A DNA stretch of 20,305 nucleotides from Bugula neritina. Lineage: Eukaryota; Animalia; Bryozoa. Made by a program: the position numbers and the translations under genes. The notes beneath the pieces were generated by a model. That model was not told where the DNA came from, made no database searches, and worked only from the letters and a program-made list of their open reading frames with translations. Shown piece after piece: positions 1 to 20,305 of the stretch. Each line of letters begins with the position of its first letter. Positions within the stretch are counted from its first letter, which is position 1. Where the stretch lies: the NCBI GenBank assembly GCA_964035545.1, contig CAXIUT010000157.1, positions 1 to 20,305 on the forward strand, given 5' to 3'.

Positions 1-100
1 CCCAACCCCAACCCCAACCCCAACCCCAACCCCAACCCCAACCCCAACCCCAACCCCAACCCCAACCCCAACCCCAACCCCAACCCCAACCCCAACCCCA
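1..100 (+). repeat. Left telomere, (CCCCAA)n
   Basis: Perfect C4A2 hexamer array at the window start, in the orientation expected for the left end of a ciliate macronuclear chromosome. Confidence 0.97.
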
Positions 101-203
101 TTATTTATTTATCAAATATTGAAATATTTATCTTTATGATTATTTAATAAATCTGTCATTTCAGTCATAATGTTCATTTATAAACTGTTATAACATAAGT
201 TTA

Positions 204-1034
204 ATGCGCAAATCTCCTTCCCCCCGAAAACAAAAAACATCTCCTCTTCCTTCTCGTTCATAATCACCCTCTCATCGATCTCGTTCCCCTCCAAGATCTT
301 CAGGACCTTCTGAACTACTTATTGAAGATAAATTAAGAATCAATAGATAGAAACTCTCCCACACTTTGGATACTTATTCAATGTTAATTAGCTCAAATAA
401 TCCTATTCGTTGTCTAGAACATAATAGTTCTATTTCTATGTATTGTTCTACAGATAATAAACTACTATGTGGTAATTGTATCTTTGAAAAAAATACTCAT
501 AAATTCCATAAAATCACACCTATCGACAAAAGCTACAATCAACTTAAAGAAGACATCAGAGAAATGACATTTTCAGTTGAAAAGTAAGCAATTACTATTG
601 GAAATATTGCATCTATAATTGCCAATAACATATTAACAGAAGAAGCTACAATCTTTCAAACTATCGATCTACTTAACATGAAATATACCTAAACTCAATA
701 AATGCTCAAAGAATGTTTTAGTCATTCAAAATAAAGATTAATAAGAGCTTTAGAAGAAGTTAGAATCAAACAGTAGACAGTAGTACTATAGCTAAACTAT
801 CTTAAAGAAATTTATACTCCAAGAAAATCACTTTCTCTTGCTTATAACTAAAATGATCTTCTTCAATAAATTCTATATGATCATTCAATTTTGAAGACTA
901 TAAACGGGCAAAAAAAGTTTTAAGGAAACGTAGAAAAATACATAAAAACTGAATTAGAACAATTTGCAAATGAATAAATAGTTAAAGTGGATTCTATAAG
1001 AAAAATAATATTAAGTGTATTATAGTATCAATGA
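204..1034 (+). CDS. B-box zinc finger / coiled-coil protein (~276 aa) with S/P/R-rich N-terminus
   Basis: ATG 204 to TGA 1032-1034 is open when TAA/TAG are sense. Contains CLEH-x7-C-x7-CGNC-x6-HKFH (B-box type 2 pattern) followed by a helical, coiled-coil-like region. N-terminus MRKSPSPRKQKTSPLPSRS... Confidence 0.85.
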
Positions 1035-1093
1035 TATTGATGTCTATGAACTCTCTCTGATAGATATGAATAAATAAATAATAAGGATTAAAA

Positions 1094-2034
1094 TCAAAAG
1101 ATTTCATTACTTTTTTGAGGGAACAAAAGACCTTTGAAGATCTCATAAAAGTAGAAATAAATGCCCTTCTGGAAGACTCCTCTCATCAAATTAGCTGTTA
1201 TACCTTTGTAGAATCCTTTTAATCCTTCTTCTCTTGCAGTTCTTAAGAAAAGATCAGATACTCCATTGTATTTTTAAGCTTGACTTTCTCCCACATACTG
1301 GTTTTGCTGAATTCTAGTGCGCATAGTCGTGATCGGGTAGGAGAGAAGGACGGAAAAGATTTTACTAAGACTACCACAGAGGAAGTGTTTCTCATCTAAA
1401 CGACTGGTTGGAATATTGAGTTTTTCATAGAGGAGTTTAGCTCCCTAATAGACATACATCTGCACTACTCCTGAAAAGGAAAGTACCAAACTCAACTGTA
1501 ATCCCTTTAAGAAACCCTTCATCCCATGCTGGCTGTAGATCTCTCCGACCTGTTTCTTGCAATTTCCAAACTAGCTGATACGTTTATTCACATTCAGCAA
1601 CATTCGAGTTTTAACGACCCAAAGAGGTTGAGTAAGGAAGGTGGTCAAGAAGCTAGCTTATATACTGGCAAGAGTGACAGCATCCATTACCTGGTATCCT
1701 CTATTTTGGTATGTATTTTTTCTTGTTTCATAGTTCCAAAAGAAGAAGGCCATAGATGAGCCTTGACAGAGAAGAGAGATATAGAATCCTTTGTAAAGTC
1801 CTTTAAAGCCTTAATTTTTATAGATGCTTTTGAGAGCGTTTTTGATTCCTGTATATTTGGGCACAAGGTTTTGATTTGTATTTTTTCCATCGTGACCTTC
1901 ATGAAGAAATATTTACTTTGGAAACGAGTCTTAATTAGTTATAAAGGATGAACAATGCCAGAGAAATATGTAGCACACATGGAAGCGGCCACATATTTGA
2001 TGGAAAAAATATTAAGTTAGTCTTTTGACGTCAT
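1094..2034 (-). CDS. Mitochondrial carrier (SLC25) protein, folate/FAD carrier-like (~306 aa), one intron
   Basis: ATG 2034, intron 1897-1916, TGA 1094-1096. Three carrier repeats: HPLELIKTRFQ...EGFKGLYKG, QPLWVVKTRM...HGMKGFLKG, YPITTMRTRIQ...EGLKGFYKG. The PLWVVKTR second-repeat motif is typical of SLC25A32/Flx1-type carriers. Confidence 0.92.
1897..1916 (-). other. 20-nt spliceosomal intron (GTAAATATTTCTTCATGAAG)
   Basis: Removal restores the carrier frame (TRFQSHDG...). Confidence 0.9.
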
Positions 2035-2389
2035 AATTGAATAATTTGCGACAGTTCTTACGATTAAAATATTATAAGTTTAAATAGATAGTACAACCAC
2101 TTATATTATCAAATAATCAACACCTTGACAGAATCCATCAGAAATCAATTAACACCCTGCATTCATATTCTTCTCCTGTATTCTCTTATTTTCTCAATCA
2201 ACAATGATTTTTAAATAACTTTTTCGAAAAGAGCTTATGTAGATTTTTTCTATGACATTTAGTCTATTTTTCGAGTTCGATATTTGAATTAGATTTTAAT
2301 TTAGGAGTTGATAATTAGTTAAGATAAATATATCTATGATAATTCTAAAAACATTCGATTAATTTTATTGATTCTATCGATTATCTATC

Positions 2390-3365
2390 ATGTCAATCAA
2401 TCCATAGTTAGACCTCATGCCTATTTGCAAATCAATCCAAAATAAAATGGAGAATTCTCTACTTAATGAGTTAGAACATGTACTAGCACAAACTCATCTG
2501 TTGTAAGATTGTCGACAACAAATCTAGAGGAAACAATTCAATGAATTCAATAACTTTTCATTGTATTTATGCGTTTATAAAGTAATATCACCAATAATTC
2601 AATAGGATGTAATCTATCAACGGAAGAATCGTTTAGAAATCGATTTTCTTAAGAATTTTAAAACTCCATAATTAATTCAGCCATTGAGGAAATTAAAAAT
2701 AATTGCTCCCAAGAGACCTTAGACACAGTCACTAGCTATCTAGTTAACAGCAAAGTTAGATAGTATTAAGATATTAAGGTTTAGTATGATAAAAAAGTTA
2801 AGGAATGTGAAGAATTATCTGTCCTTATCATCATGTAAATACTTCTTTATAAAGAAAACAAAAAGATATCAACTATGTGTAAAGAGATCTTGCTAATTTG
2901 AAAGGAAAATAGTATTTTTTAGATGACTAAAGAAAAAAGAATAAGAAGAAAGCTGATCAATTAGACGTAAAATAAAAAAGAATTCATAATGCTTAAATGT
3001 CCCTTATTTTTAAAGAAAAACTGCATATTTAAGGTAAAAAAAGATATTAAAGACAAAAAGATCTTAACTAATCCCTTATTCGAAAACTAAATCAAATTTA
3101 TAACTAATTGAACAGTCTCTAGGAGTCAATCTTCTCTAAAATGGAAAAAGCAAGTTGTGAATGTCAATCAAACTGTTGGAAACAAGATGTAATGAAAAAA
3201 TGTAAAGATCAGTTAGTTCAGCAAAGGAAGATTCTTCAGTAGGAGTCAGAATAGATCGAAAAAGAATACTAGATTATGAGAAATTTATCATAACAGATGA
3301 AAAAAGTTTTTATCAATGTCCATGCTGAGAATGGAAGCAAAAAAAATGAAGATATAGCTAAATGA
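2390..3365 (+). CDS. Hypothetical coiled-coil protein (~311 aa), two introns
   Basis: ATG 2390; 20-nt GT-AG introns at 2563-2582 and 2835-2854 give a continuous E/K-rich frame to TGA 3363-3365. No recognised domain. Confidence 0.72.
2563..2582 (+). other. 20-nt intron (GTATTTATGCGTTTATAAAG)
   Basis: GT-AG, 20 nt; joins into the natural downstream frame. Confidence 0.7.
2835..2854 (+). other. 20-nt intron (GTAAATACTTCTTTATAAAG)
   Basis: GT-AG, 20 nt; required to reach the terminal coding frame. Confidence 0.75.
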
Positions 3366-3429
3366 TATTTATTATCTGATATTTATTTTGATAATAAGAT
3401 AAATATTTAAAAAGTATAGTGGATAGTAA

Positions 3430-4593
3430 TCATTTATTGATAAACTTTTTGTATTTCTAAATATTTCTTTGAAGAATATTTTCAATAGGACCTAGAAGTC
3501 TTTTAAATTCATTTCTGCCGATTGATAATAATTTACATTTAGTCGTTGTTTTGATGCTTGCCTGTCTGACTGTATTTTTGATCAATGAAATCTCACCAAA
3601 ATATTACTTTTCTTTATATTTAAAGACAACTTATTTCTTTTGTGTTTTAGGATTCATCTTTTATGCAACCAAATTGCCTTCTTTAATGAAATATAGTCGA
3701 TCACCATTTTAACCTTCTTCTACCACATACTCATTAGCCTCAAATATTTATTATTTAAGAGAATCACATAGTTGCTATCGTTCTGAAGCTTATACTTCTG
3801 ATAAAATATCTATTTGTTTTATAATTTATTCGCATTATTGTCTCCTTTTGATTGCTGATTCCTGAACAATATTAGAAAATGTTTGTCGATCTAATCCATA
3901 AATTATTCCTGCTTTTATGCATTTAATAGTCGCAGCTCTTTTCGCATTATACATCAATGATAACTCACCAAAAAGCTCACCTGATTTATAAGTTTTCAGA
4001 TAAGTCTTCATTCCATTTATAACTTTACTACATTCATATTCGCCCTACCCAATAACGTAAAGCATATCACCAGCTTCACCTTATTTAATTATAATTTCTC
4101 CTGTTGAACATTTTTTTGTCTACATAGCCTCAATTACTATTTTCATGTTATCTTCTGAAAGGTTATCAAACATAATAGATTTCATCAGCAAAGATTGAAT
4201 AAAAGAAAATGATCTTTCACTTTTTCTAATAGTTTTAGGCTTAAATTCTACCTTCTTATTAAAAGAACCAAAAACTTCAGCACTGATTCCTTTTCGACTA
4301 TGACTTTATCGATTTTTGTTTTTTCTATCATTGGCTTTTTTAAGCATTGCTTCTTCTTGCTCTTTGCTATAGGCATTTCCTTAACTTGCTTATGATAGCT
4401 CAGTATCACAATTTTTGGCATTTTCCTAAGCTTCTAAATAATGAAGAAATATACATATTTGTTTCTGAGCATACTAGAAGATAAACTTCATGATATTCTA
4501 TGGCTTGGCATCAACTATCGCCTCAACCATAGGTCTTAGTAAAGGATTAACTGTATCGGTGAGATATTTTTTGATCTTCTGATTTTCTTCCAT
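3430..4593 (-). CDS. cAMP-dependent protein kinase regulatory subunit (~380-387 aa)
   Basis: ATG 4593 to TGA 3430-3432. N-terminal docking-like helix (YLTDTVNPLLRPMVEAIVDAKPENIMKFI), inhibitor site SRKGISAEVFG, and two cNMP-binding domains (FGELSLMYNAKRAATI; FGEISLIKNTVRQASI). Possible in-frame 21-nt intron at 4434-4454. Confidence 0.93.
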
Positions 4594-4631
4594 AAATATA
4601 AAAACAAATTATAGAAAATAAATTGACATTA

Positions 4632-6980
4632 TCACTATTTTCGAATATTAGAACTCTTCATTAAAGGCCAATTATCAATTATTTTTGATATTTTCTCTTT
4701 ATTTTCCCTACGAGATACACTTTGCTCACTAAAAGATTCTTATAATCGAGAAATATCTTCAATTAGTCCTTCAAGTCTTTAACCCTAATAGTTGGTTGCT
4801 TTTTTCGTGGAAGTCTTTGATTATTAGATTGAGTTTTTATGAAGTAGATTTAAATAACCAAAAATTTGTTTTTAGTAAGATTGCTTTTCTTCAATCAGTT
4901 TATTCTAACTAAGAATTCTTTGATTCATTTATGATTATATTTATTTGATTTTACTCTAGAGTCTAAATATTTTATGGATCAACTATTCTTTTTCTTTATC
5001 GAATTCTTTTATTCTTTATTTGAGCATCAAGTTACTTTGTTGCAACTCATTACGTTCATTTTGAACTACTTATATTTTTGCCTTCATCTATCTATTTACG
5101 ATGAGTATTTCCTACCTTTCTTTTTAAAAAGAATGTATTTTGCTCAAATCTTGATGATATCTCTCTTGAAATTCATACACTCTTTTTTTCATACTACTAA
5201 GTAGTTCTTTTGATAAAATACTTTCTTCAGATTATTCTTTCAACAATAAACATAATTGTTTATATTGCTCTACTTTATCAATACACTAAGATAACTCTCT
5301 TTTAAGATGACTATTTTATCTCTAAAGATCAGATCGAAAACTATCAGCATTCTAAAATTTTTTGTTTTCAAATAATGATTCTTACAATTTAAGTCTTAAA
5401 GAACCTAATTCAGATCTCAGTTAATTAATAAATCTATCTTTTTGAAGAATTTATTCCAAATGATTTTGCTAACTATGATTCTTCTATCTTTTATACATCT
5501 CTTCTACAGTCATAACTTTTATTTTTAGCCTTTAAATTTATTCCAACAATTATTTTTCTTTAAAATCCCTTTCTATCCTATTTTTAGAGCGATATGATGA
5601 TATTTAAACCGAATTGTCTATTTATCTTTCTTTACTAGAATGATAGTTTGATTTTTGGTTGATACGACTCTCAAGTTAACTTACAATTGATTTTAATCGG
5701 TGTATTTAATCTTTCAAAGGCCTTGTCATTTAAATTCCTTAGCGATTTTCTTCATAAATATGACTTGTAATAAAGGGAACTTCCTTCAAGTTGATCAAAT
5801 TGCTATTATGAGTTTTATTTATCAATTATTATTCTGGTTATTCGATGTATATTTATGATTTTTTAATACTAACATTAGATTTTTGTTTTCTCTATTTTAA
5901 AGATTAAAGATAATGTTCAATAGCAGCTTATTTCTCTTAAAGCAGAATAACTTTTTTAATTAGTTGTTCTAAATGTAAACGAAATTGCTAAAATAATTTT
6001 TAATTCTAATTTACTACCTTTTACTTAAATACCCTTATATTACTATCAAATTGTTCTTTCATCTTTTTGAAGTGAACCTTTTAATGTTATTCATTGATAG
6101 CTATTTTTTCTTCATAGTTAAGAGTCGATAGCTGATATTTTTGTTAGAGCTAACTCAATTGTAATCCTATTTTTTGATATTCTTGTTCAATAATATTTTT
6201 TTGCTGTTGAGATTTGTTGTATTAGTTTGCTAAATTTTTATTAGCTGCAATTATTTTTGATAATTATTGTTAATAATCTGCTTTTTGCTGGTCAATTATC
6301 TTTTTCAATATATTTATCTATGCTAAATAGCGATTATCAACATTTTATTGTATTACTGTGTTATTTTTCTTTTATTTTGTTGAATATTCAACCATTTTTG
6401 ATCCCAAAGTTACCTTAAGTCGATCAATATACTCTTGAAGACTTATATTTTATGATGTCAACCTTTTAACTGTCCTTTGCAATTCCAATAACTCCTTTTC
6501 TTGTTATTATTGACTATTTTATATTTTTTCTTTTACAAATATAGTTTTTCCTTTTCCTTTGTCATTATACAATCTAATAATATTTTTTAATTCTATGATA
6601 ATATCTTATTTTTCTCTTACCTATGTTTGTAGTTGAAAAATCAGTTATTGCTCATGCTGTCTTCCTTAATTTGGAAGCATAGCAGTTGAATGTGCTCTTT
6701 CTTCTGTGAAAAATCTAGATCTAGGCTGTGTTTCTACTATCTGTTGACTCTGAGACTAGCAAATAGCTCTATATGGTTGTGATGTGGTGATTTATATGTT
6801 GTTATTAGGGTCTATGATAGAATACTTAAATTGATTGGCAGGAGTTGGTGGACGGTTGCTTAGAGACTGAGGACTTAACTGCTTACTATTAACAGATAGA
6901 TCGATGGAAGGAATTTGAGCTGGTTATAGTTTAAGGACTAAGTTTTTGAATTTATCATCAATGTTGTTTCTATCAGTCAT
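4632..6980 (-). CDS. Long coiled-coil hypothetical protein (~782 aa)
   Basis: Uninterrupted 2349-nt frame from ATG 6980 to TGA 4632-4634 with TAR as sense. Low-complexity S/P/Q N-terminus, then E/K-rich heptad-like sequence. Confidence 0.85.
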
Positions 6981-7060
6981 CGATAAACTTTTATTGATTT
7001 TATTTATTATAATAGTATTCAATATTTAAATATATTTTCACATATTATTAAATGTCATCA

Positions 7061-7231
<171 letters not shown>

Positions 7232-7269
7232 TTATATTATTAATTTATATCTTCCGCCTCTTATAGTTA

Positions 7270-9457
7270 ATGAGCGACGAACTGCCAGTCAAATTTTACA
7301 GTAATTAAACTCTAATTCAGAACGAGATATCTTATACGCAGTAGAACACAATCATGTAACCATTATCTCAGCATAAACTGGATCAGGAAAAACAACTCGT
7401 ATATTGATCATTATTTAGAACTTCCTCAATTTCTCATTCAAGCTGGCTATACTCTAAGTGATAAAAAATAGCAATAGTATTACCCAGAAAAATAGCTGCC
7501 ATTTCAATAGCTCGAAGAGTTGCTGAAGAACTTGGATGCAATAATGCTGAAATAGCTCATAAAGTAAGATTTAATTCACAAGTAAATTCAAATACAAGAG
7601 TAGTTTTCATGACTGATGGATCTCTAGTTCAAGAATTATATTCAGATCCTTTGCTTTAAGCATATTCAGTTGTTGTCCTTGATGATGTTCATTAAAGATC
7701 TGTAAACTACGATATCTTGTTTAGCTTTCTTAAAAGAATTTTAACTCTGAGAAAGGACTTCAAAGTTATAATAACATCTGCTACTGTTGATACTTAAAGT
7801 ATTGCTAGTTTTTTCACTCTTAGAAGAGAATATAAAAATAACGAAGAGAGTCTCAAAGTCAAAACAGTCAATATAACAGGAAGGCTTCATTAAGTTTATA
7901 TTCACTACTTAAAATAACCAACTAAAAACTATTTTCTTAAAGTTTTTCAGACTATTGTCTACATTGACAGAGAAAAATCTCATGGAAATGTGTTGGTATT
8001 TCTTACTTCAGTTGAATAAATCGAAGGAATGATCAATATGTTGGATTCCTACTCAGTATAGAATAAAAGAAGACTTAAATTGCTACCTCTTCATGCAAAA
8101 TTAGGTTCTTAAGAGCAAAATCGTATTTTTGAAAAGAGTTTTGATAGAAAAATTATACTATCAACCAATATAGCTGAGAGTTCTATCACTATTCCTGATA
8201 TTAAGTTTGTTATAGATTGTGGTTATGTTAAGGTCAAAAGTTTCGATTGGTAAGCGGGAATCGATAAGATGATAGTGGTTCCTTGTGGGAAAAGTAGTTC
8301 CAATCAAAGAGCAGGAAGAGCTGGTCGAGTAACTGACGGATAATGTTTCAGAATCTATCATCAAGAAGGATTCAATAATATGAATGATCGTTTGCCGCCT
8401 GAGATAATGAGAATTGACCTTTCAAATTTTATTCTTAAATTGAAAGGATTGGGAATAGCTGATATTCTTACATTCTAATTTTTAGAAAAACCTGAGGAAG
8501 AACATATAGCTAAAGCTATTGACATTCTTTATGCCTATTAGCTTATTGACTAACATTTTTAATTGACTGAAAAGGGGAAAAAGGCTGCCTAGTTGTCAGT
8601 TGAAATAAGAAATGCCTGTATGTTACTTAACTCTTTTGATGCTAAATTCGGATGTTCTAAATAAATTTTGATGCTTGTGGCAATGTTATAAGTTCAGGGT
8701 GAACTTTTTGCAGGACATGGACTAGGAATCCTGAAAGCTAAGAAGAAAGTTGGAGCCAAATAAGGTGATTTTTTGACTTTGATTAACTTCTTTATCAGAT
8801 TTCACCATGGAAATGTAGGAGATCGTAAAAGAATTTGTGGATAGTACAAATTAAGATTTCCTATTATGGAACAAGCTCTGAAAATCTATGATTAGCTAGC
8901 TGCTCAATTTAAACGTTTTAACAGATTCAAAAATTCAGAAGAGTAAATGTAGTTCAATTTGGATAAGAACCCAAAAGAAAAACATTTTAAGTTAAATCTT
9001 CTCTTGATGAGCATTAAGCCATTCTGAGATGTATTTTGACAGGATATTTTACCAATGTAGCTCAAATACAAGGAGATGGATCTTATTTAAATATAAGATC
9101 AAAATAAAAACTAACCATCCACTCTACTTCTATACTTTCAGTAGTCTATCCTGAGTGGATTATCTATCATCAGATCATTAAAAGTAGTAGTCACTTTATT
9201 CACAATGGAAGTCAAATTGACCTGAATGGATTTTCTAACTTGCCCCAAACTACTATAAAGATAAACGCAAGGATCACGCACAGACTAATTATAAGAAATA
9301 GACAGAGGTATAAAGACCTGAATAGATATATAAAAAAGAACAAAAAGGACTTGTTGAAGTTGGCGGGTCAAAGAAGAAAATTGAAGGTTTTAATACTGCT
9401 GTATTTGGATTCAAAAAGATGAAAAAAGCAACTCTTTCTTTTCAAGAAGATATTTGA
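7270..9457 (+). CDS. DEAH/RHA-family RNA helicase, DHX35-like (~716 aa); two introns and three apparent 1-nt deletions
   Basis: [19 protein letters not shown]..., motif I AETGSGKTTQLPQFL, Ia [53 protein letters not shown]; HA2/OB-fold motifs [35 protein letters not shown]. Introns 7301-7320 and 7399-7418. Frame breaks near 7463-7468, 8985-8990 and 9221. TGA 9455-9457. Confidence 0.9.
7301..7320 (+). other. 20-nt intron (GTAATTAAACTCTAATTCAG)
   Basis: Removal links the conserved LPV motif to ILYAVE. Confidence 0.88.
7399..7418 (+). other. 20-nt intron (GTATATTGATCATTATTTAG)
   Basis: Removal restores the canonical GKTTQLPQFL. Confidence 0.93.
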
Positions 9458-9546
9458 TAAATCTATTGTAATATTTTTATTTAAAAGTTATCTTGTTCAC
9501 ATTGATTTAGTTATTTTTAAATCATTGAATCAATAATAATAATTTA

Positions 9547-10235
9547 ATGTAGAAAAAACACAAAATTATAGATAAAAAAATCTAAATGGGTGAATCACAA
9601 TATCTCATCAAGATGTTTGGAGATCACATCTCGAATGCTAAGTGGCTTAACTTAGAATAAATATAATCTCAATATCCATAGCTTAAAAAATAGATATAAA
9701 GATATGATTAAGAGGTAAGTAGTAGATATAGAATACTGACAAATATATCTAGATAAAATCTGATAAAAAAGTATAGTATTTAACAAAATGGTGACAAAAG
9801 TGCCTAAGTAAAATAGAAGAAAAAAAGAGGTCCAAAACCTAGATTAAGAGATAGACATAAGGCATAAATCTTTTAAAAAGCTAAAATAGATGTGAGAGAA
9901 AAGAACAATAGTTATATAATTCCTTCTGATGATTTAGTATTGAATATAAAAACTTCAGTAAAAATGGAAAGTAATTGGATTTTTGGAGATAAAGTTAAAG
10001 AAGTAATAAAGTTAAAGAAGTACTTTCTAAAACAGAAGGAGAACCATTTTATAAAGTTGTTTGGTAAGATGGATCTGAAACTGGAGTTAGAGAAGATCAG
10101 TTGATTCAAAGAGAAACATAAAATCTTTGTTTATATTGGGAGAAAATGTTGAAAATCAATAGAAAAAGACCAAGAAAAATATAGAATAAGTCAGTTCAAG
10201 AATAAAAAATTAAATCTATAAATCTTGAGTAATGA
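9547..10235 (+). CDS. HP1-like protein: divergent chromodomain, basic hinge, chromoshadow-like domain (~223-229 aa); one frame break
   Basis: N-terminal IIDKKIEMGESQYLIKMFGDHISNAKWLNLEEI resembles the chromo fold. Hinge KKKRGPKPR. C-terminal WIFGDKVKEV...GEPFYKVVWEDGSETGVREDQLIQRETENLCLYWEKML resembles the chromoshadow fold. Frame break at ~10006-10022; TGA 10233-10235. Confidence 0.62.
9989..10022 (+). repeat. Perfect 17-nt tandem duplication (ATAAAGTTAAAGAAGTA x2)
   Basis: 9989-10005 is identical to 10006-10022. Confidence 0.95.
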
Positions 10236-10344
10236 AAAATTCAATGATAGTTTTAAAGGCAATGATATTACTTTTTTATTAATCCACAAATTATGTGAGA
10301 GATACTCAAGTTTTATAACAGATTATTATCAGACAATATTGCTG

Positions 10345-12556
10345 ATGTACAAACAAACTAAATAAAAAGCTAAAAGAGAATAACGATCATCATAGGAGTT
10401 ACTTTTCTAAATTCGTAATCTACTGACTCCTGTACCCAAATAAACTACCCATAAACATATGAATGCAGATGAAATTGAAGATATTCTTAAAGAGTCGTTC
10501 GAGAACTATAAGCTAATCCAAAACAAAAGCTAAAAACCTCATCTAAAACAAAGAGCACAGGAAGCTGTCAACATCGTTCAAACTAAACATCCACAACAGT
10601 TCATTCAGAATTATACATAACAAAAAGTATATTCTGAAATGTTTTTCAACTTAAGAGGACCTCTTCCGGAATAATAATAAGAATCTTTTCAGAGATAAAG
10701 ATAGGAATTGTTAAGGCAAAGAGAAATTGAACTTGAGGAGGATAGAAAAAGAGAATAAATGGTCATTGCTAGCCGTAAAAAGATTTCTCAATTATTAAAC
10801 AAATTAACTTCCTATGTCAGCTATTTCTGAATTCACTATGAGAGAAGGATAAGCAGCTATGCCCTATCTACTGAATCAAGCAGCTGAAAAGCAACATAAA
10901 TCGACTAATAACTTGATTCGATAAGTTGAATAGCTATAATTATAAAATAAGTTTGAAGAACTCAAGAAACATTCTTTGAACCCTTCAAGTAGTTCAAGGT
11001 TAATTAAACAAGGAGATGATATAGTTTTTGAGATCATTGATGAGGATAATCATATCAATGAAAAAGATTTTAAGCATAAAATGGAACAAAATATTCAAAA
11101 TGTTCTCAAACGTTCTCCAAGATTTGTACAGGCTTTTAAGTGTTTATTATAAAAAAATATAGCTCTTAATAAATATCAAAATGAAGATATTTCTTCAATG
11201 AGAAATAGAAATTCTTTGATTCGCAGCGATGCTCTTTACAACTACCCTACTCAAACTCAAATTTATCCTGAAAGTAAGAATCGTCCTTAAACTTTAGCTG
11301 AATTAACTAGATCATATAAAAGCAAGGGAATAGTTTATAAGATAAATCGGAGGAAAAATCAGTATCAAAAGAATAAAAAATTATATCATAAAGAATAGTA
11401 AATAAAATGAATGGATAAAGTACTGAATTTCATTCTAAAAAGATCATTCTAAAAGAAGATTAGTTAATTTGGTGTATGTAAGATGAATAAATTACAAAAT
11501 AAAGTAAAAAAAGTTATCTTGATTGTTCAACAAATCAAAGTTATCAAGTGTTATAAAGAAGAAGGAGGCATTCTAAGCAAAACTAAAACTTAAGTTGAGG
11601 TTGTCCATCTTAAAGGAAAAAATAGAGATATTAAATTTGAAAAGAATCATCTTTAAGGAAATTAACTTTATAAATAGCTTTGTATTTTGATGGCTCAAAG
11701 ACTACTACACTTAAATACAATTTTAACTGGCAGTATAAATTAAAAACTAATCGATTTTGTGAACAATCCTAAAGCAAAAACATTCTCTTTAGCATAAAAT
11801 TTTTTTACATGATTACTAAAAATATCCCGACAATAACTATAAACTAATGATAATAAATATCCTTTCAGCTTTATTTCCAATGAGAAACATAAGTAACAAC
11901 TCTTGACCTGAGCAACGTACAATTTAACATCTTATAAACAGCTACAATAATCAAAGGCATCCAGCCGTTAACCAAATTAAAGAAGATATTCTTAGACTAA
12001 ATTTAGTAATTAATCTTTTGGAAGTCTAATGACATTTATATCTAAACTTGTCTGGCAATAGTTAGATATAACTCTTTCTTCTTGTTTTATTAGTGATTAG
12101 CTATTAAATAAAACAAGATAAATTATTATCAAATGCACTAACATACAAAAACTTGATCTATCTGATAACAACATCACGATGAATGGCTTCGGAGTGCTAA
12201 CCTAATTAGTTTCCCAACCTAGAGAACACATGACCTAATTTAAAATCAGCAAATCAAAAATCCAAAATCTGATTACTCTTGGAGAATTCATTCGAAAAGG
12301 ATAGGATTTGGAAGTTATTTATGCCTAAGATTGTGGTTTTAGCTTTGATAGTGATGAGTAAGTATCTTCTTTCTTTAAATGTTGTAGGGAAAGTCATCTA
12401 AAAAAGCTGTCTTTGTTGAAAAATTAATTAGTAAATAATTTACATCCTTTTGAATAGTTTTGGACAACTGAATATCCAAAGGAAATCTAGATGGATGTGG
12501 GTACTTTTGCTGAAAAGACTTCTAGAAATATTCAAGGCAAGTTGTTATAATATTGA
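10345..12556 (+). CDS. Large protein with coiled-coil N-terminus, PH-like domain and C-terminal leucine-rich repeats; exon/frame structure unresolved
   Basis: ATG 10345. PH-like segments KSKGIVYKIN / FHSKKIILKEDELIWC / VILIVQQIKVIK / HLKGKNRDIKFE / ELYKELCILM. LRR units VTTLDLSNVQF, IQKLDLSDNNIT, LKKLSLLKNEL. TGA 12554-12556. Needs a candidate 23-nt intron (11398-11420) and +1 shifts near 10760-10830, 11500, 11800, 11890 and 12000. Confidence 0.55.
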
Positions 12557-12787
12557 TTGAATAAAATAATATTAAAGTTTATATTAAATAATATGTGATG
12601 ATAATTAGCTGCGTACAATTGACTTATGATACTATGTTCTGCAATTCTGATCAATAACTTACCCTATCAATATTATTTTACTCTAAAAAATCAATGATCA
12701 AATTGATTTGATTTTAGGTGAGCAACTTGTTGAATGCTTCTTGAAACAATCATCATTGATAGTATTTTATTTAATAAGAAATGTCAA

Positions 12788-14073
12788 TCACTATTTATTT
12801 CTCACATTGTTTAGGGCAGCTTTCAACTTTTATTGTCGCTACAACATTTATTCGAGATTTTATCCTTTGGATTCATACTAGATATCAATGTTTTCTTATT
12901 TATTTGCTTTTAATTCTGCAAAATAGTCTTTCTTATAGCTATTTTACTCTTGATTCAGCTATTAATCTTCGTATTGGATATCTTTCTCGCCTTTATTAGC
13001 ATGACTACAACTTTGCTATGAGAAATCTAAGGGAATTTCTTCAGAACGACTGACTGTTTTCGATAAACTTTGATCTAAAGGTAGCAAATGAATAGTTTTT
13101 CCAGCTATGAGAACGATCAAATTTTAATCAATTGAGATATCAAAAGATGAAAGAACCTAAATATAATAAAAAAAAAACTTGTTTTTGATTTTTATTGAAA
13201 AGAACCTTCAAGCATCCAGCTTTGATTGAAGTATTCACTCCATAGAGAGTTCTATCACTACCCAAAAGAACTAACTGTCCTGAATAGCTAAACTGAAGAT
13301 GTAAAATTGATTGAAAAGGAAGTTAAGCCATATGACATCCTAATTATCCTTCGTTATTTTTATTTAATATGAAAAGCCATCTTGCTTTACCACTAAATAT
13401 AAATAATATTACTGGATTGCAATTGTTTTTCCACAAGTAGAAGCAGCTATTTTCATATCTGGAATGGTAAATGGAAGTTTGAAAAAAGAAAATAACTTTA
13501 GAGAAGAACTTTCTAGCACTCTAACTTATCCATTTCTCAGAAGGATACCAATATAACTATTATTGCCAAGGAAACATGCACCAACGAAGATCTCATCATT
13601 TTTTGCTTTGACTGATTTGATTTTTTGTTTTTTATCAACAAGAAGCACGATTTTGTATTAAGCCAAAAGAGTGGTATCAGTGAGTGAGTTCTTTTGGAAG
13701 TTAACAAGTTTATTGAGACAAGGATTGAATAATCGACATATTTTTTTGTTTTAAAAATGAATATGCAACAGTTCTGAGTTGCTAGCCACAGCTGTAATAG
13801 ATAGACTGCTTTGACCTACTTTAGAGATAGAGTACTATTGGGATGGAATTGTTGAAGTTTACAAGTTGATAAAGTAGAAACAGATTTATCAGTAAGGTGT
13901 AGACATGTTAGTTTTCCTGCTGAATCAAGTAGATAGAGTCTTTATTTATCAATTGTTAGTTTGGATTGAACTAATTATTGAACCTTATCGAGCTGAATAG
14001 TTTTGGAAGTTAGTTCTTTGCCATCTTAATAGAACCTTCCGAATCTAGAAGAAGAAAGCAGACTTGAATGCAT
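12788..14073 (-). CDS. Beta-propeller (WD40-like) protein with acidic coiled-coil tail (~407 aa), three introns
   Basis: ATG 14073; introns 13816-13835, 13393-13412 and 13157-13178; TGA 12788-12790. Blade-like strands RLYLLDSAGKLTCL, IGILLRNGEVRVL, LQFSYSGQLVLLGSD, FDISIDENLIVLIAG. Confidence 0.68.
13157..13178 (-). other. 22-nt intron (GT...poly-T...ATATATTTAG)
   Basis: The unspliced frame hits TGA immediately; removal continues the ORF. Length is uncertain because of an 11-nt homopolymer. Confidence 0.7.
13393..13412 (-). other. 20-nt intron (GTAATATTATTTATATTTAG)
   Basis: GT-AG, 20 nt; restores the frame. Confidence 0.85.
13816..13835 (-). other. 20-nt intron (GTACTCTATCTCTAAAGTAG)
   Basis: GT-AG, 20 nt; restores the frame. 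Confidence 0.78.
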
Positions 14074-14172
14074 TTTATCCAATCAATATGAAATATAGCA
14101 CTTAGATTATTGTAACAGTCATACCTATCAATATATTTTATTAATTTATAATATTTGACCTTGAGTAAAAGA

Positions 14173-15012
14173 TCATTGATGGACGTTTTCAATTACAAAA
14201 ACATTCCTAAAGAGTTCAATTATTTCTTTCAGCGACAACTATAGCATTAAAGGATAAATTTTAACTGTCTCAGCTGTTCCATTTAAATAGTATGGTTTCA
14301 GGGCTACTAAAGGTGTTTCTTCTTATCCAAGTTTGAGTTTCTTGTCTGCTTATCCTTCAGCCATTACTACTATAAAATCTTTATTAGTCAAATGATTGTG
14401 AAGTTTTTGGAAAATGTTCTATCTTTATTTCTATGTGTCTCCACAGTGACGTAAACTATTTTTACCTGTTAATTATAACAATATTTGATTGATTCCTATG
14501 TTAAGAATTCCTTTATAACAATATCTGAATTTAGAATATGCCTTTTAGAGGAAAGAATAAGGACTGAAAGAAGCTAAAGGAACTCCATCGATGAAGGGCA
14601 ATAAATTATCAACCAATACATATCTTTTATCTTTTTAGTTGATATAAAATTAGAAGATAAAGGGAACACTGGATTCTAAATATTAACTATTTTACATTAT
14701 TTAAGAGGTTGTAACTAAGGAATGTGCAACTTGAATCCTTCTTTTTGATTGTGAATAGCTAGCAGTTCACATAAAGGTACTACCATACATCTTTTCATTG
14801 GATATTGTCTATTTTAATGCTATTTAGCTGATAAAAAGTTGACTTGCAGATACCTCGTTCCATTTCAGAGTCTCAAGTATTGGCCAACCTTTAGGTAAGA
14901 TATTATCATAGTAAAGAACTGAATAGAGACCATTTGGACTAGCATCATTAGGACCAAAATCTGTATCTATCCACTTTTATCCTTTTTTCAATTGTTTTTG
15001 AATAACATTCAT
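14173..15012 (-). CDS. Degenerate calpain-family (CysPc) domain, in frame with upstream UFL1
   Basis: KGEKWIDTDFGPND...LKW, FEFYINEKDKRYVLVDNLLP, FLEKAYSKFRYCYKGI...ILLELTG and LVALKPYYL correspond to calpain motifs (DxDFxP, VxVDDxLP, LEKAYAK, DLTG, GLVxGHAY). Intron 14676-14695, one +1 break at ~14770-14860, TGA 14173-14175. Confidence 0.75.
14676..14695 (-). other. 20-nt intron (GTAAAATAGTTAATATTTAG)
   Basis: GT-AG, 20 nt; leads into the calpain-motif frame. Confidence 0.75.
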
Positions 15013-16427
15013 ATTGATGTTCAAACTTTACTCAGTTCTAAGAATGGTTTTACAAGACTTGTATTTAAGGAATGAACTTGAAATTAATCCTTTACTCTGT
15101 GCTAAATCTTTTTCTATGCTCTTTTTTAGTTATTCTAATTTATGAAGTAAAAGATCTAATAACTACTAAGAAAGATTTTCTGCTGACGAATAGTCAGTAT
15201 ATCCACAGTTAAACAACACTTCTTGTAGTTATTGCTGTGTTATAAGCTCAGTTTTTTCTTTTTTACCCTTCTTTTTTGCATCTTTTCCTTTGGGATCAGG
15301 TTTTTTGAAAAAAATAGTATGAATAATTTTATGTTTAAATTAATTTGCAAGTCGATCAAGCCATTAGTTTGAATAGATAAATCCTTAATATAAAAAGTAG
15401 TCTTTTAGTCCACATTTTTCTTAAAGGAAGTAGTGAAGTTCTTTTTAATCCAAGTCGATGGGCATAACTTGACTTAGTTCAAGATATCCTTAACTTTTAA
15501 GCCCAGATGTAACCTGAGCAGCTAGAGTTTCTAGTTTTGTTTATTCGAAATACATGTTATTTATTTTAATAAAATTGTTTTCAAGGTTTTTTTCAATCCA
15601 TTCTTCAGGTTTCATTATCAAAAATTTCTTTCTAAGCATATCTGTATCAATATATCCATTATTTGCAAGGAACTGAGTGACTAATCGCTTTTGATTGAAA
15701 GTAAAATGGGCTGGGATATAGTAGCCATTTGCATATTTGCCTTTTAATTTTCCTTAATCAAGTAGTTATAAGAGTAAAATTTCTGTATTTTTAGGATCAC
15801 TTTCCACTGTTTTATAGAGTACTTCGAATTGTAGAGGGTTATTGATGGCACTTAGAAATCCTAAAATTTTAGCTTTTTCAAGTAAAGTATACTCTTTTGT
15901 AATAAGTTGTTTCCCTGATAATTAAGCTTTAAGTTTTTAAAGGTTTTGAGCAACTAATTTGTCCATAAACTATAGTTTAAGATCATGTTCAATAGCAAGA
16001 TGTTCTAGATCTACTTTACCTTACTCCTATAATTGTTGTTTAAGAGCGATGATCAGATTATCAAAGTACTTATTAGAAAATAAATTAAGACCATTTCTAG
16101 CAATATTTTATCTTTGCATTAACCCATTGACTCTGCTTTCAACTAATTCTGGACCGATGTTAAGTAGTTGTGGAAGCATATCTACATTAAAAGAAAAATA
16201 CTTAATCCTATTTTACCTCTCTACTTGACTAAGCTAGATATTTAAAAATCAAGTTGTGAGGGAGTAATGTATTAGTTATTATCGGTGGTAGGTATAAAAG
16301 CAAAACCTTTATGATGTAGTTTGACCATAATTTAGGCAACTGTCCGTTCAGATAAAGGGTTGGTTTTCTCTTCCTGAACAGACATTAGTTCTCTTTGCAG
16401 CAATTAAAGTTCAAGATCGATGTCCAT
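15013..16427 (-). CDS. UFL1: E3 UFM1-protein ligase 1 homolog (N-terminal ~460 aa); no in-frame stop before the calpain-like region
   Basis: MDIDLELELLQRELMSVQEEKTNPLSERTVAEIMVKL...TTDNNEYITPSQLDFEI...ERGKIGL matches the UFL1 N-terminus (LSERNCIEIV...DGKEYITP). Later YIPAHF...FLANNGYID and a KGKDAKKKGKK basic patch. Intron 16182-16201. Confidence 0.88.
16182..16201 (-). other. 20-nt intron (GTATTTTTCTTTTAATGTAG)
   Basis: Removal restores the UFL1 frame. Confidence 0.9.
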
Positions 16428-16585
16428 GAAATAATGAAATTTATAATATCAACATTGACACCATGATAGATATCAAATAATATTTAAATTCAAAAAATTA
16501 TCATTTTTTAAACTTTAGCTAAATATCTGGTTTTAATGATCAGATATTTAGATTATAATTATATCTTTTGAAAAATATTATAATC

Positions 16586-17968
16586 ATGCGCATCCTTTTT
16601 GACCTCAAAAAAGTCAATGGCAAGTTCAACTATAAAGGACGCATAAGACTCAGACTGAAAGTATATTTTATATAATCAGATTGACTAATCTCTTACTATT
16701 CTCTCGGAATTAAGCAACTACAACAGTGGTAGTTATGCCTTTCTAGAAAAATAAATTGTCAAAATTGTCAAATTTAGCTAACAAGCTTCAGTCTAGATCT
16801 CTCTTTTAGCTGAGACTGGAGTTTTACTCTGTCAAATAACTATATTCTATGCTAAATTTGTATAATTATTATTATTAAGCGTGACTTAAATAGTATCTAA
16901 GTCAGACACTAACAGGAAGTCTATAAAGTTTACTATAAATTGACAGAACTTGCAGACGATGACGATTAGGATCTCATAAGAAATACTCTTATTAGAACTA
17001 GCTCAAATGAAAAAGGTTTTTAGCAATCTCAAGAATCAGGAAAACTGGAAATACTCAAACTAGGAGTATTAATGTATGAATTCGCCCAAAGACTTGACCC
17101 ACTTATTTACATATACAAAGGAATAATCGATATCTTAACTTGGAAAAGTCCATATAAAACGATATCTCTGGGTATTCTACTTACTTTAGTTATCTACAAT
17201 TTGAAAACAACAATAGTCATTGTTGGTTTGTTACTTTATTTCGGAAAAGCTTTTCTCTTCAAGAAACTCTACAAATTACAACCATTTAAAAACATTCATA
17301 AACGAATCATAGTTCCATAATAAAACGCCTATTTTCTTCAACAAAGCATGGACAACTATTGCCTAGTATATTCCAACCTAAATTAATTTCTATTTAATGA
17401 AGACAAAACTGTCCTCATCAACATCATCAATCTTTTTTGTAAATTAGGTATATTTCTCACAATTTTACTCTTCTTCTTTGGAATAGATCATTTAGTCGTT
17501 ATTGGACTATGGACTGTTCTTTTCATGACTAGTCCTTATAGAAATTCAGCTCTCAAATATGTCAAACCGTTGATGCAGTTTGTCGTTGGGTAGTATAGTA
17601 AAATTGTTGATAAAATATCTTTAGGGATATCTAATGTACTTGGTAATGGATCAGAAATTGAAAATAACTATGTGCAAAAGGAATTTTACTTCTATAAATA
17701 TTAAAGATGGTGGGTTCTCAAGGGATGGCTCGATTAAACCAAAAAGTTTTCAGACTAAGACTATGAATGCATAGTTATTCCAAAAGAAGATCCTCCAGAA
17801 GGATGGGCTTGGGTTTAAGAGTGGAAAATCGACCTCTCTGGTGAAATGGATCCAGATGGTTATCAATACACCAACGATATAAAGACTTCTTTCGATGCCA
17901 ATCATACTTTGGCTGTCAGGAGAAGAAGAAAATGGAAAAGGACTTGCCAGCAATTGAAACCTGAATGA
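16586..17968 (+). CDS. Pex30/Pex24-like membrane protein: putative C2-like N-terminus, reticulon-like hairpins, C-terminal DysF domain (~447 aa), two introns
   Basis: ATG 16586; introns 16661-16679 (19 nt) and 16860-16879 (20 nt); TGA 17966-17968. ILTWKSPYKT followed by two long hydrophobic stretches; DysF signature YERWWVLKGW...PPEGWAWVEEWKID...DPDGYQY...VRRRRKWKRTC. Confidence 0.85.
16661..16679 (+). other. 19-nt intron (GTATATTTTATATAATCAG)
   Basis: GT-AG; the unspliced frame stops at TGA just downstream. Confidence 0.75.
16860..16879 (+). other. 20-nt intron (GTATAATTATTATTATTAAG)
   Basis: GT-AG, 20 nt; joins to the frame of the transmembrane region. Confidence 0.82.
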
Positions 17969-18071
17969 TAAGCGAGATAAATAGCTTAATTAATAAGTAT
18001 AATCATTTTAATTAAATCTATAATAAAGATACTTGAAATATAAACTAATAAGATAAAATTAACTTTATGAA

Positions 18072-19841
18072 TCAGTTCCCAAAATAGAGTTTAAAGATAA
18101 TTCTTATAATTTTCGAAAGAACATCTGTTTTGCAATTTGACAGCCACATTTTGAGATCAGAATAATCTATTTTATCAGCAGTTATTTTCTTTTCATTGAG
18201 GTAGTCTTCAAAAACTGTTGATATTTATCCATGATTTTCGAATAATTGATTATAAGCATGACATATAACCAACATAGTCATTGTATAATATATTTTATTA
18301 CCTTTTATATTAGTAGATTTAAGTGCATCAATATATTTAGAGTAGGCACTACTTGTTGATTTCCTATAAGATTGCTTGAACTCAGAGAAATCTTTTTCAT
18401 TAATAGTTAGTTGAAATGAATTCAAGAACTCTTTGTTGAATTATGCTATATATTCTTTAAATGGTTCACATTGATCGTAAATGACTATAAATTTTAATTA
18501 GTATTGACAAAGATCCTAATTGATTTCTATTATTAGATCTTTATAAGGTTGAGTATGCGAATATTATTACCATTTAGCACCAGGATATTCTTTGGATAAA
18601 ATTTAAACGGAACATTCTATTCTAAATCTTCTTAGAAGAATCAGATAATATTTATATATATTATAGCTGAGAGATAAACGTTAGGCAGCTTTGAGTACTC
18701 TACCATCATTGATAAATAATTATGCGCTATCTCTAAGATAATCTATTTGATCTTTTTTACCTCCTAGAAGTTGCTATTATTTTGCAAATTATTTTGTATT
18801 TGAGTGAATTCTGCTTAGTTCTACAGGAATATTCTACTATTATTATTCTAATTTAGATTTTTCTTCCTAACTAATCTATTCCTTGATTGGTTTATCTTAT
18901 TTTTCTTTATCTAAAGATTTTTTTTTCTATATTTATCCAGAAGATATTCTAAATATTTTAATTTTTTGACTATACATAATTTTAGATTTCTCTAAAACTT
19001 TAACAAAATGTTTAGCAAAAATAGGGTGTTCCTGGATCTCAGCAAAAGTTATTCTAGTTGTAGGATTGGGATCAAACATTCTTTTAAAAAGATCTTCAAC
19101 ATCAGGAGTACAATTTTAGACTATTTTAAGTTTAGTATGAGAAACAAGTTCTTTATAACTGAAATTTAATGCTGCTTTTTTCAGTTATTTTCCTTTTACC
19201 AATTCACTAGCATTGCGGTTTATTCTAAATGGCATTTGATTATTAAGAAGTTCAAAAAAAATAACACCAAAAGACCACATATCAACTTCAAATCCATACT
19301 CTTATTCTAGAAAAACCTCTGGGGATTTATAATATTCTGTTCCGAGATTGGTTCCCTGTACATCTTTATGCTGTTTGCTAAATCCAAAATCAGTAAGCTT
19401 AAAGGTATATTTTCCATTTTATTCCTTAGCTAAAATATTTTGAGGCTTAAGATCTCTATGAAGATACCCCTAACTATGAAGGTGCTCAAGTCCTCTGATA
19501 ACATCAGAAAGTAGACAAGTTGCTTCCTACAAGTTAAGTGTTTTTAATTTTTTAGTTGACATGTATTTGAAGATATCTCCTCCATTGCAAAACTACATAA
19601 GTAGATATAGGGATTTTTAATCTCTACTTTTCTAAAAAAGTTTAGCAATGTAAGGAGAGTTCATTGTCTACATGCACTTGATTTAATTAACGAGGCATTT
19701 TTGAAGATAGGGATCATTTTTTGTTTGATAAAGAGACAATATTTTAAGAGCATACTCTTTATTCCCTTCCAAAACCAAGTAAACCTTTCCAAAGGCTCCT
19801 GAACCTAGAGTTCTTTTGATTTTTAGCTTTTCGAGAAACAT
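18072..19841 (-). CDS. Serine/threonine protein kinase (~589 aa) with helical C-terminal extension
   Basis: Intronless frame from ATG 19841 to TGA 18072-18074. LGSGAFGKVY, YALK, alphaC NEI, MEFCNGGD, HRDLKPQN, DFG, SPE, DMWSFG. Loosely ULK/ATG1-like; subfamily not certain. Confidence 0.95.
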
Positions 19842-20236
19842 CAGATAATTATATTCTTAAAAAATTAGAGTTGAGTTACATAAATCATAAAGCTTAATAT
19901 TATTTCTACTTATAAATCTATAGTTTAAAATAGAATAAAAATAATATTTATTGATATTTTATTATTCTCATTAATTTTGAACTTTTTAGGATTGATAAAG
20001 ATCGATTAATAAAAGATATTTTTTACATATTTGAAATATTTATTGATTAAATAAAATATTTTAGAGATAATTTAAATAAGAAATAATGTATTAACTAAAG
20101 GTTTTGCTAGAAATAAAGAATTAAAATAGTTTGACTATTAAAGTGATTTTATTTGATAATATTTTAAAACAGGCATAAAATTTTTATAAAAATATTCTGA
20201 ATCTTCAACACATCAATATTTTAAAATAATAAATAT

Positions 20237-20305
20237 GGGGTTGGGGTTGGGGTTGGGGTTGGGGTTGGGGTTGGGGTTGGGGTTGGGGTTGGGGTTGGGG
20301 TTGGG
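20237..20305 (+). repeat. Right telomere, (GGGGTT)n
   Basis: Perfect G4T2 array at the window end, preceded by ~395 nt of very AT-rich non-coding DNA. Confidence 0.97.

Follow-up and report, generated by a model that had tools for sequence, protein, structure and literature searches.

The 20,305-bp contig analyzed here over its full length (C166, hereafter the window) belongs to a 216-Mb genome assembly of the bryozoan Bugula neritina comprising 321 contigs, and it is very probably macronuclear DNA of a ciliate, most likely a peritrich, present as a passenger in the animal assembly, in which UAA and UAG both encode glutamate and UGA is the only stop codon (NCBI translation table 30). Nine TGA-bounded frames of 104 to 801 codons, 3,991 codons altogether, contain 154 TAA and 59 TAG codons, equal to 48% of the inferred glutamate codons, and not a single TGA. 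As TGA accounts for 2.2% of codons across the six frames, the 801-codon frame alone would have a probability of 2e-8, and a TGA stands directly after each of the nine frames. A first-pass annotation made from the letters of the window had proposed TGA as the only stop, and this is true of all nine frames; UGA thus appears to be the only termination codon in the window, where the DNA gives no sign of a gene ending at TAA or TAG.

The identity of the amino acid is indicated by alignment with close relatives. For the helicase and the protein kinase A regulatory-subunit-like (PKA-R-like) pieces, these were found in ENA GROS21-1, a wastewater metagenome, Logan runs, JGI samples, and NCBI assembly GCA_020054605.1, among others, and the order of the PKA-R-like, coiled-coil, and carrier genes is preserved in relative contigs. 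Before masking, tblastx results for the PKA-R-like and carrier pieces were dominated by telomere matches; with telomeres masked and duplicates removed, the ortholog set consisted of eight contigs at 45 to 84% protein identity and covered 65 in-frame TAA, TAG, and TGA codons of the window. Counting one relative at one site as a cell, the 103 cells aligned with TAA held Glu in 60 cases, TAA or TAG in 18, Gln in 8, and Lys in 7, and the 47 aligned with TAG held Glu in 17, TAA or TAG in 9, Gln in 7, and Asp in 6. Under substitution profiles learned from the same alignments, in which D, K, Q, and Y show substitution patterns of the standard kind, the empirical log-likelihoods were −164 for Glu, −267 for Asp, and −311 for Gln at TAA, and −147, −193, and −223, respectively, at TAG. 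When sites rather than cells are counted, the partner seen most often is Glu at 28 of 46 TAA sites (Gln at 5, Lys at 2), and for TAG the same holds at 8 of 16 sites (Gln at 3, Asp at 1). The reciprocal test gave a matching picture, with the TAA and TAG codons of the relatives found at 25 of 79 Glu, 2 of 54 Gln, 3 of 141 Lys, and 3 of 48 Asp sites of the window. This concentration on window Glu sites implies that the relatives share the code, and judged by these alignments the same code is in use in the related environmental ciliates.

The genes and telomere tracts to which these and the following codons belong are, from left to right:

6..95, plus strand: (CCCCAA)n telomere at the left end of the contig
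123..1031, plus strand: B-box zinc-finger gene frame with 10 TAA, 4 TAG, and 0 TGA, then a TGA
1097..2116, minus strand: mitochondrial carrier gene (Pfam PF00153), holding TAA 1939, TAA 1811, and TAG 1445
2811..3362, plus strand: conserved gene frame, unnamed, with many in-frame TAA and TAG codons and a 58% identical ortholog on L089
3430..4674, minus strand: PKA regulatory-subunit-like gene with two cyclic nucleotide monophosphate (cNMP)-binding domains (Pfam PF00027 twice)
4635..7037, minus strand: coiled-coil gene frame of 801 codons with 52 TAA, 19 TAG, and 0 TGA
7108..7203, plus strand: internal (GGGGTT)n tract
7270..9422, plus strand: DHX35-type DEAH helicase gene (Pfam PF00271, PF07717)
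14476..14634, minus strand: calpain-like stretch with TAA 14545 (SFL-TAA-KAYSKF), its family without Pfam confirmation
14770..16300, minus strand: UFL1 (E3 UFM1 ligase) gene (Pfam PF09743), holding TAA 16272
16814..17965, plus strand: Pex24p-like membrane protein gene frame with 10 TAA and 3 TAG, then a TGA (Pfam match)
18075..19967, minus strand: protein kinase gene (Pfam PF00069 on two pieces) with 23 TAA and 12 TAG
20237..20305, plus strand: (GGGGTT)n telomere at the right end of the contig

The first-pass annotation had built its case for glutamate on nine codons at conserved positions, and the coordinates, strand, frame, and peptide context of all nine were verified (TAA 7374, 7693, 19683, 1939, 1811, 16272, and 14545; TAG 19593 and 1445). 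Its gene labels also held up for the helicase, carrier, kinase, and UFL1 genes, which contain eight of the nine codons, as Pfam scans run on uninterrupted pieces returned the respective families; the calpain label was not confirmed. TAA 7374 lies in motif I of the helicase and TAA 7693 in motif II (DDVH-E-R), while TAA 1939 falls within the P-x-[D/E]-x-x-K motif of the carrier. The two kinase positions (alphaC region, TAA 19683; hinge, M-E-F, TAG 19593) are assigned from motif knowledge only, and a word-index protein search with the N-terminal piece of the kinase gave no candidates. In the UFL1 gene, the piece at 15769-15921 corresponds to positions 165-206 of the PF09743 profile and the piece at 15544-15753 to positions 220-270, and the profile spacing across TAA-LLD-TAA-G (TAA 15766 and 15754) agrees exactly with one residue per TAA. 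Carrier orthologs (L084, L089) have GAA or GAG at 1445, 1658, and 1811. When the PKA-R-like and carrier pieces were used to look for host orthologs and ciliate paralogs in the assembly, few loci were obtained. A paralogous carrier on contig C288 (L082) has GAC at 1939 and TAA at 1445. Comparison of helicase codons with the L074 and L075 orthologs likewise supports TAA as Glu, and in the L089 ortholog of the 2811..3362 frame, the TAA and TAG codons of the window stand mostly opposite GAA or GAG. The L089 contig also has an ortholog of the B-box gene (Pfam PF00643 on the piece at 351-584), and partial orthologs of the coiled-coil gene were found on L090-L094. It had further been claimed that the code holds on both sides of the internal telomere, and this is borne out by recoded, ortholog-supported genes that flank the tract at 7108-7203.

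Deep homologs of the helicase point in the same direction for TAA. A full HMMER search with a 64-residue piece of the helicase retrieved DEAH helicases, 70 mixed examples of which were aligned by tblastn to the window; the top match of this large search, P0001, was rejected as spurious, being a repetitive protein of 4,564 amino acids with no tblastn match to the window. Glu was the commonest residue opposite TAA 7374, 7693 (70/71), 7795, 8017, 8110, 8662, and 8761. The best full-length match to the window helicase was DHX35 of Ichthyophthirius, and a word search with that protein yielded 120 orthologs of the DHX35 family, which came from animals, fungi, plants, amoebae, and ciliates. Against these, the log-odds summed over 19 TAA columns were +15.1 for Glu, −8.1 for Gln, −15.3 for Asp, and −26.5 for Lys, with Glu in 119/120 sequences at 7693, 106/121 at 8662, and 100/118 at 8761, and the controls were correctly assigned (GAR to E, CAR to Q, and AAR to K). 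The assignment of TAA to Glu made in the first-pass annotation is accordingly supported by deep homologs, close orthologs, and the carrier paralog, and that of TAG by close orthologs, the reciprocal test, and three sites in a release factor gene elsewhere in the assembly.

That gene, a ciliate eRF1 gene on the minus strand of contig C314 (~17040-18380; L104), also bears on how the code might be read. It is itself rich in in-frame TAA and TAG codons. All three of the TAG codons that could be aligned stand opposite Glu of the host eRF1 (DF-E-PF, RL-E-KRHNY, and VA-E-TAV), and a TAA stands opposite the Glu of ADEYG, a conserved residue that precedes the NIKS loop. In eRF1, NIKS and GTS are published determinants of stop codon recognition, and at these places the ciliate protein differs from that of the host, with RASQIKD for TASNIKS and NGSV for NGTS, while YxCxxxF is kept. 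These motif changes suggest a release factor restricted to UGA. When the whole assembly was searched by pattern for tRNAs whose anticodon is UUA or CUA, two intact tRNA(CUA) genes emerged. They lie on ciliate-type contigs (C10:16787-16858, plus strand, and C256:3981-4052, minus strand), and both have a full cloverleaf and a T-run after the gene. The two are 75% identical (54/72), and in the C10 copy acceptor-stem pair 4-69 is an A-A mismatch. In the scheme that we favor, the window would be somatic DNA of the passenger ciliate in which UAA and UAG serve as ordinary glutamate codons, contributing about half of all Glu codons, with UGA as the sole terminator; dedicated tRNAs, of which the two tRNA(CUA) genes on other contigs would be examples, would read the former stop codons, and eRF1 would no longer recognize UAA and UAG.

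The source organism was placed with a maximum-likelihood tree of DHX35 (LG+C20+F+G4; 29 rows, 688 columns; no peritrich among the rows), for which the window and its relatives were stitched together from helicase tblastn segments with an X at each TAA or TAG. Ciliates were recovered at 100/99, and within them a clade at 100/100 united Tetrahymena, Ichthyophthirius, Paramecium bursaria, one Logan sequence, the window, and two environmental relatives, with the window group sister to Paramecium at 92/76. By this one-gene tree, the organism falls within Oligohymenophorea with 100/100 support. The C4A2/G4T2 telomere repeat is of the Tetrahymena type, and the repeat of the window is likewise C4A2/G4T2; the G+C content of the window is 24-36%, and the assembly, which has 9 chromosome-sized contigs, carries C4A2/G4T2 telomere tracts on many of its small ones. 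In maximum-likelihood phylogenomic trees, Peritrichia stand beside Peniculida within Oligohymenophorea (PMC10553269), the UAR = Glu code has been stated for peritrichs (PMC11687900) with a single origin in Peritrichia inferred (PMC10553269), and peritrich genomes are reported to have narrow, tiny intron-length distributions (PMC13685798). Given the position beside Paramecium, a tiny intron in the helicase gene, and the occurrence of relatives of the window in wastewater metagenomes, a sessile peritrich living on the host is, with little doubt on our part, the most likely source.

An unlikely alternative is that UAR = Glu arose independently in an oligohymenophorean outside Peritrichia. The DHX35 tree was built without a peritrich reference, the assembly lacks a ciliate 18S gene, and Oligohymenophorea already has at least three code variants (PMC10553269), all of which would leave room for such an origin. 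However, the position beside Paramecium is the published place of Peritrichia (PMC10553269), the habitats, a marine animal and wastewater, suit sessile peritrichs, and the 20-nt intron found here accords with the tiny introns reported for peritrichs (PMC13685798). If the organism did lie outside Peritrichia, this would be a second origin of UAR = Glu, and the tRNA(CUA), which is not obviously derived from tRNA-Glu, would be an independent recruitment. The first-pass annotation had named either a peritrich or another lineage with its own reassignment; this is now narrowed to Oligohymenophorea, although the choice between the two is not closed.

Several observations weigh against the assignment of both codons to glutamate in a peritrich, or against particular parts of it. 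Three of the 16 TAG sites (3252, 4120, and 4474) are mostly Gln in the relatives, and compared with the deep homologs, the signal for TAG is weak, with only five columns and log-odds of +2.0 for Glu versus +0.6 for Gln; one column has 117/121 Glu (8590) and another 41/46 Gln (8893). The argument from eRF1 would depend on published knowledge of its motifs. The first-pass annotation had suggested a search for tRNA-Glu with UUA or CUA anticodons. Genes with CUA turned up, as described above, but neither three anticodon-loop/T-loop patterns nor a covariance model derived from the two CUA tRNAs recovered a tRNA(UUA) from the assembly, a miss that is not evidence of absence because the ciliate genome is only partly in the assembly. 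The tRNA(CUA) is also not clearly built on a tRNA-Glu body. The host tRNA-Glu(CUC) is the best match to the CUA covariance model at 59.8 bits, but the host tRNAs for Gly, Asp, Lys, and Gln score no more than 3 bits lower, and identity to host tRNAs gives no discrimination among amino acids, while identity to a candidate ciliate tRNA-Glu(UUC) on contig C54 is 64% and 56% for the two genes. As for the organism, its probable identity as a peritrich is drawn from a single-gene tree without a peritrich reference protein and from indirect evidence, and a ciliate 18S gene is absent from the assembly, where the only eukaryotic small subunit rRNA genes found, also by BLAST with the host 18S, were those of the host. 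Peritrich-specific 18S primers have been published (PMC4103560), and a search of the assembly with these gave nothing useful, as it holds only host 18S.

Other tRNA genes came to light in the course of these searches. The matches rejected as tRNA(UUA) comprised tRNA-Lys genes and a tRNA-like pseudogene of the host, a mitochondrial tRNA on C73, and a sequence on C27 that is not a tRNA. The tRNA-Glu(UUC) on C54 (4581-4653, minus strand; L103:1581-1653) is the sole candidate canonical ciliate Glu tRNA found, and C54 is itself of ciliate type, with 33% G+C and long TGA-only frames. Contig C73 (L073, L010), at 19% G+C, carries tRNAs of organelle type, one of which has a 6-nt anticodon loop and occurs in two identical copies; the contig is probably the ciliate mitochondrial genome. 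On host chromosome C5, a tRNA-like gene at ~1314250-1314330 (L063:1468-1542) has UUA as its anticodon but mismatches at several stem pairs and is probably a pseudogene. At C214:41188-45349 (L002, L013), at least 11 tRNA genes of organelle or bacterial type are densely clustered, among them an 81-nt tRNA-Tyr. In the window itself, Rfam and ARAGORN gave no matches.

Among the rivals that concern the code rather than the organism, it is very improbable that the window uses the code of Oligohymenophorea sp. PL0344 (UAA = Lys, UAG = Glu) or that UAG is partly Gln. TAA 3826 and 4306 do stand opposite Lys codons in relatives, and the three Gln-rich TAG sites listed above would fit a partial Gln reading, but the per-site counts for TAA (28 Glu to 2 Lys) and the strongly negative Lys log-odds against the deep homologs argue against lysine. 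For UAG, the 8 Glu to 3 Gln sites correspond to a likelihood ratio of ~5e4 for Glu over Gln, computed from these per-site counts, and ordinary GAR sites counted in the same way show a similar Gln minority (Glu at 43/79, Gln at 6/79); TAA and TAG moreover interchange at 12 aligned cells. The two codons do not appear to map to different residues, an outcome that the first-pass annotation had counted as contrary to its proposal, and Glu is the best assignment for both in the ortholog alignments. We consider it similarly improbable that the code is context dependent, as in Condylostoma or the karyorelicts, with UAA and UAG being sense within genes yet terminating some of them. In its favor, only nine frames were examined, and the DNA sequence was the sole basis for locating gene ends. 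These nine all end at TGA with no in-frame TGA, however, and the stop of the PKA-R-like gene (16 TAA and 7 TAG codons), a TGA at 3430-3432, is a TGA in all four orthologs that reach there, while TAG 3457, nine codons upstream of it, aligns with GAA or GAT. The absence of in-frame TGA from the 3,991 codons also led us to reject the Condylostoma and karyorelict codes as tabulated (tables 27 and 28, in which UGA is also Trp and there is no dedicated stop), and the Mesodinium code (table 29, UAR = Tyr) was rejected on a Tyr partner in 1 of 103 TAA and 0 of 47 TAG cells. The least probable of all is the common ciliate code (table 6, UAR = Gln), which is used by the oligohymenophoreans Tetrahymena and Paramecium and agrees with the few sites that align with Gln (7891, and 8893 and 9105 compared with deep homologs), but which is refuted by ortholog log-likelihood gaps of ~150 for TAA and 76 for TAG, by the per-site counts, by the deep-homolog log-odds for TAA, and by the scarcity of TAR in relatives at window Gln sites; TAA and TAG mostly at Gln columns, the other contrary outcome foreseen in the first-pass annotation, is not what the window genes show, Glu being favored for both codons.

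A few features of the window concern its structure rather than its code. The helicase gene has a 20-nt GT-AG intron at 7399-7418, the removal of which restores motif I and the residues after it (GSGKTTQ-LPQFL), and its frame changes at 7463-7468 within an A6 run, where the close relative L074 (AGY..DRKIGVVLPRK) continues without a frame change; the cause is either an assembly error, with an indel in the homopolymer, or a genuine −1 shift. On the minus strand at 14176-16300, the UFL1 frame continues without a TGA into the calpain-like stretch (KWIDTDFGPNDAS...), three short pieces of which have no Pfam match. Where calpains have the catalytic-cysteine motif GDCW, the window has GSTF, and the stretch may represent either a fusion or a calpain-like domain without activity. 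Beyond the coiled-coil gene, the relatives L090 and L091 continue to RING and strumpellin genes, whereas the window continues to the internal tract and then the helicase gene; because of this difference, positions 1-7203 have the look of an entire unit, telomere to telomere, to which other DNA has been joined.

This code has been described before and is listed in the NCBI tables; the finding is real, not new. It matches table 30 as used by the peritrichs Vorticella, Opisthonecta, Carchesium, and Campanella, which have the same UAA and UAG as Glu with UGA as the only stop and belong to the same class; in contrast to these, the organism of the window comes from the assembly of a marine animal, is not placed by rRNA, and has only tRNA(CUA) decoders found so far. 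Oligohymenophorea sp. PL0344 shares the class, UAG as Glu, UGA as stop, and tRNA(CUA) genes, but its UAA is Lys, whereas UAA in the window is Glu (PMC10553269). In the table 6 ciliates Tetrahymena, Paramecium, and Oxytricha, UAA and UAG are likewise reassigned together with UGA as the only stop, the difference being the amino acid, Gln instead of Glu. The value of the result lies in annotation. The standard, bacterial, or table 6 code shreds or mistranslates every gene on the ciliate-type contigs of the assembly, with about half of the glutamates lost or misread under a wrong code, and public protein collections already contain shredded pieces from related organisms. Relatives with UAR = Glu occur in metagenome collections, wastewater included, as well as in two NCBI assemblies. 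The eRF1 gene, with its RASQIKD and NGSV motifs, and the two tRNA(CUA) genes provide handles on how the code is read.

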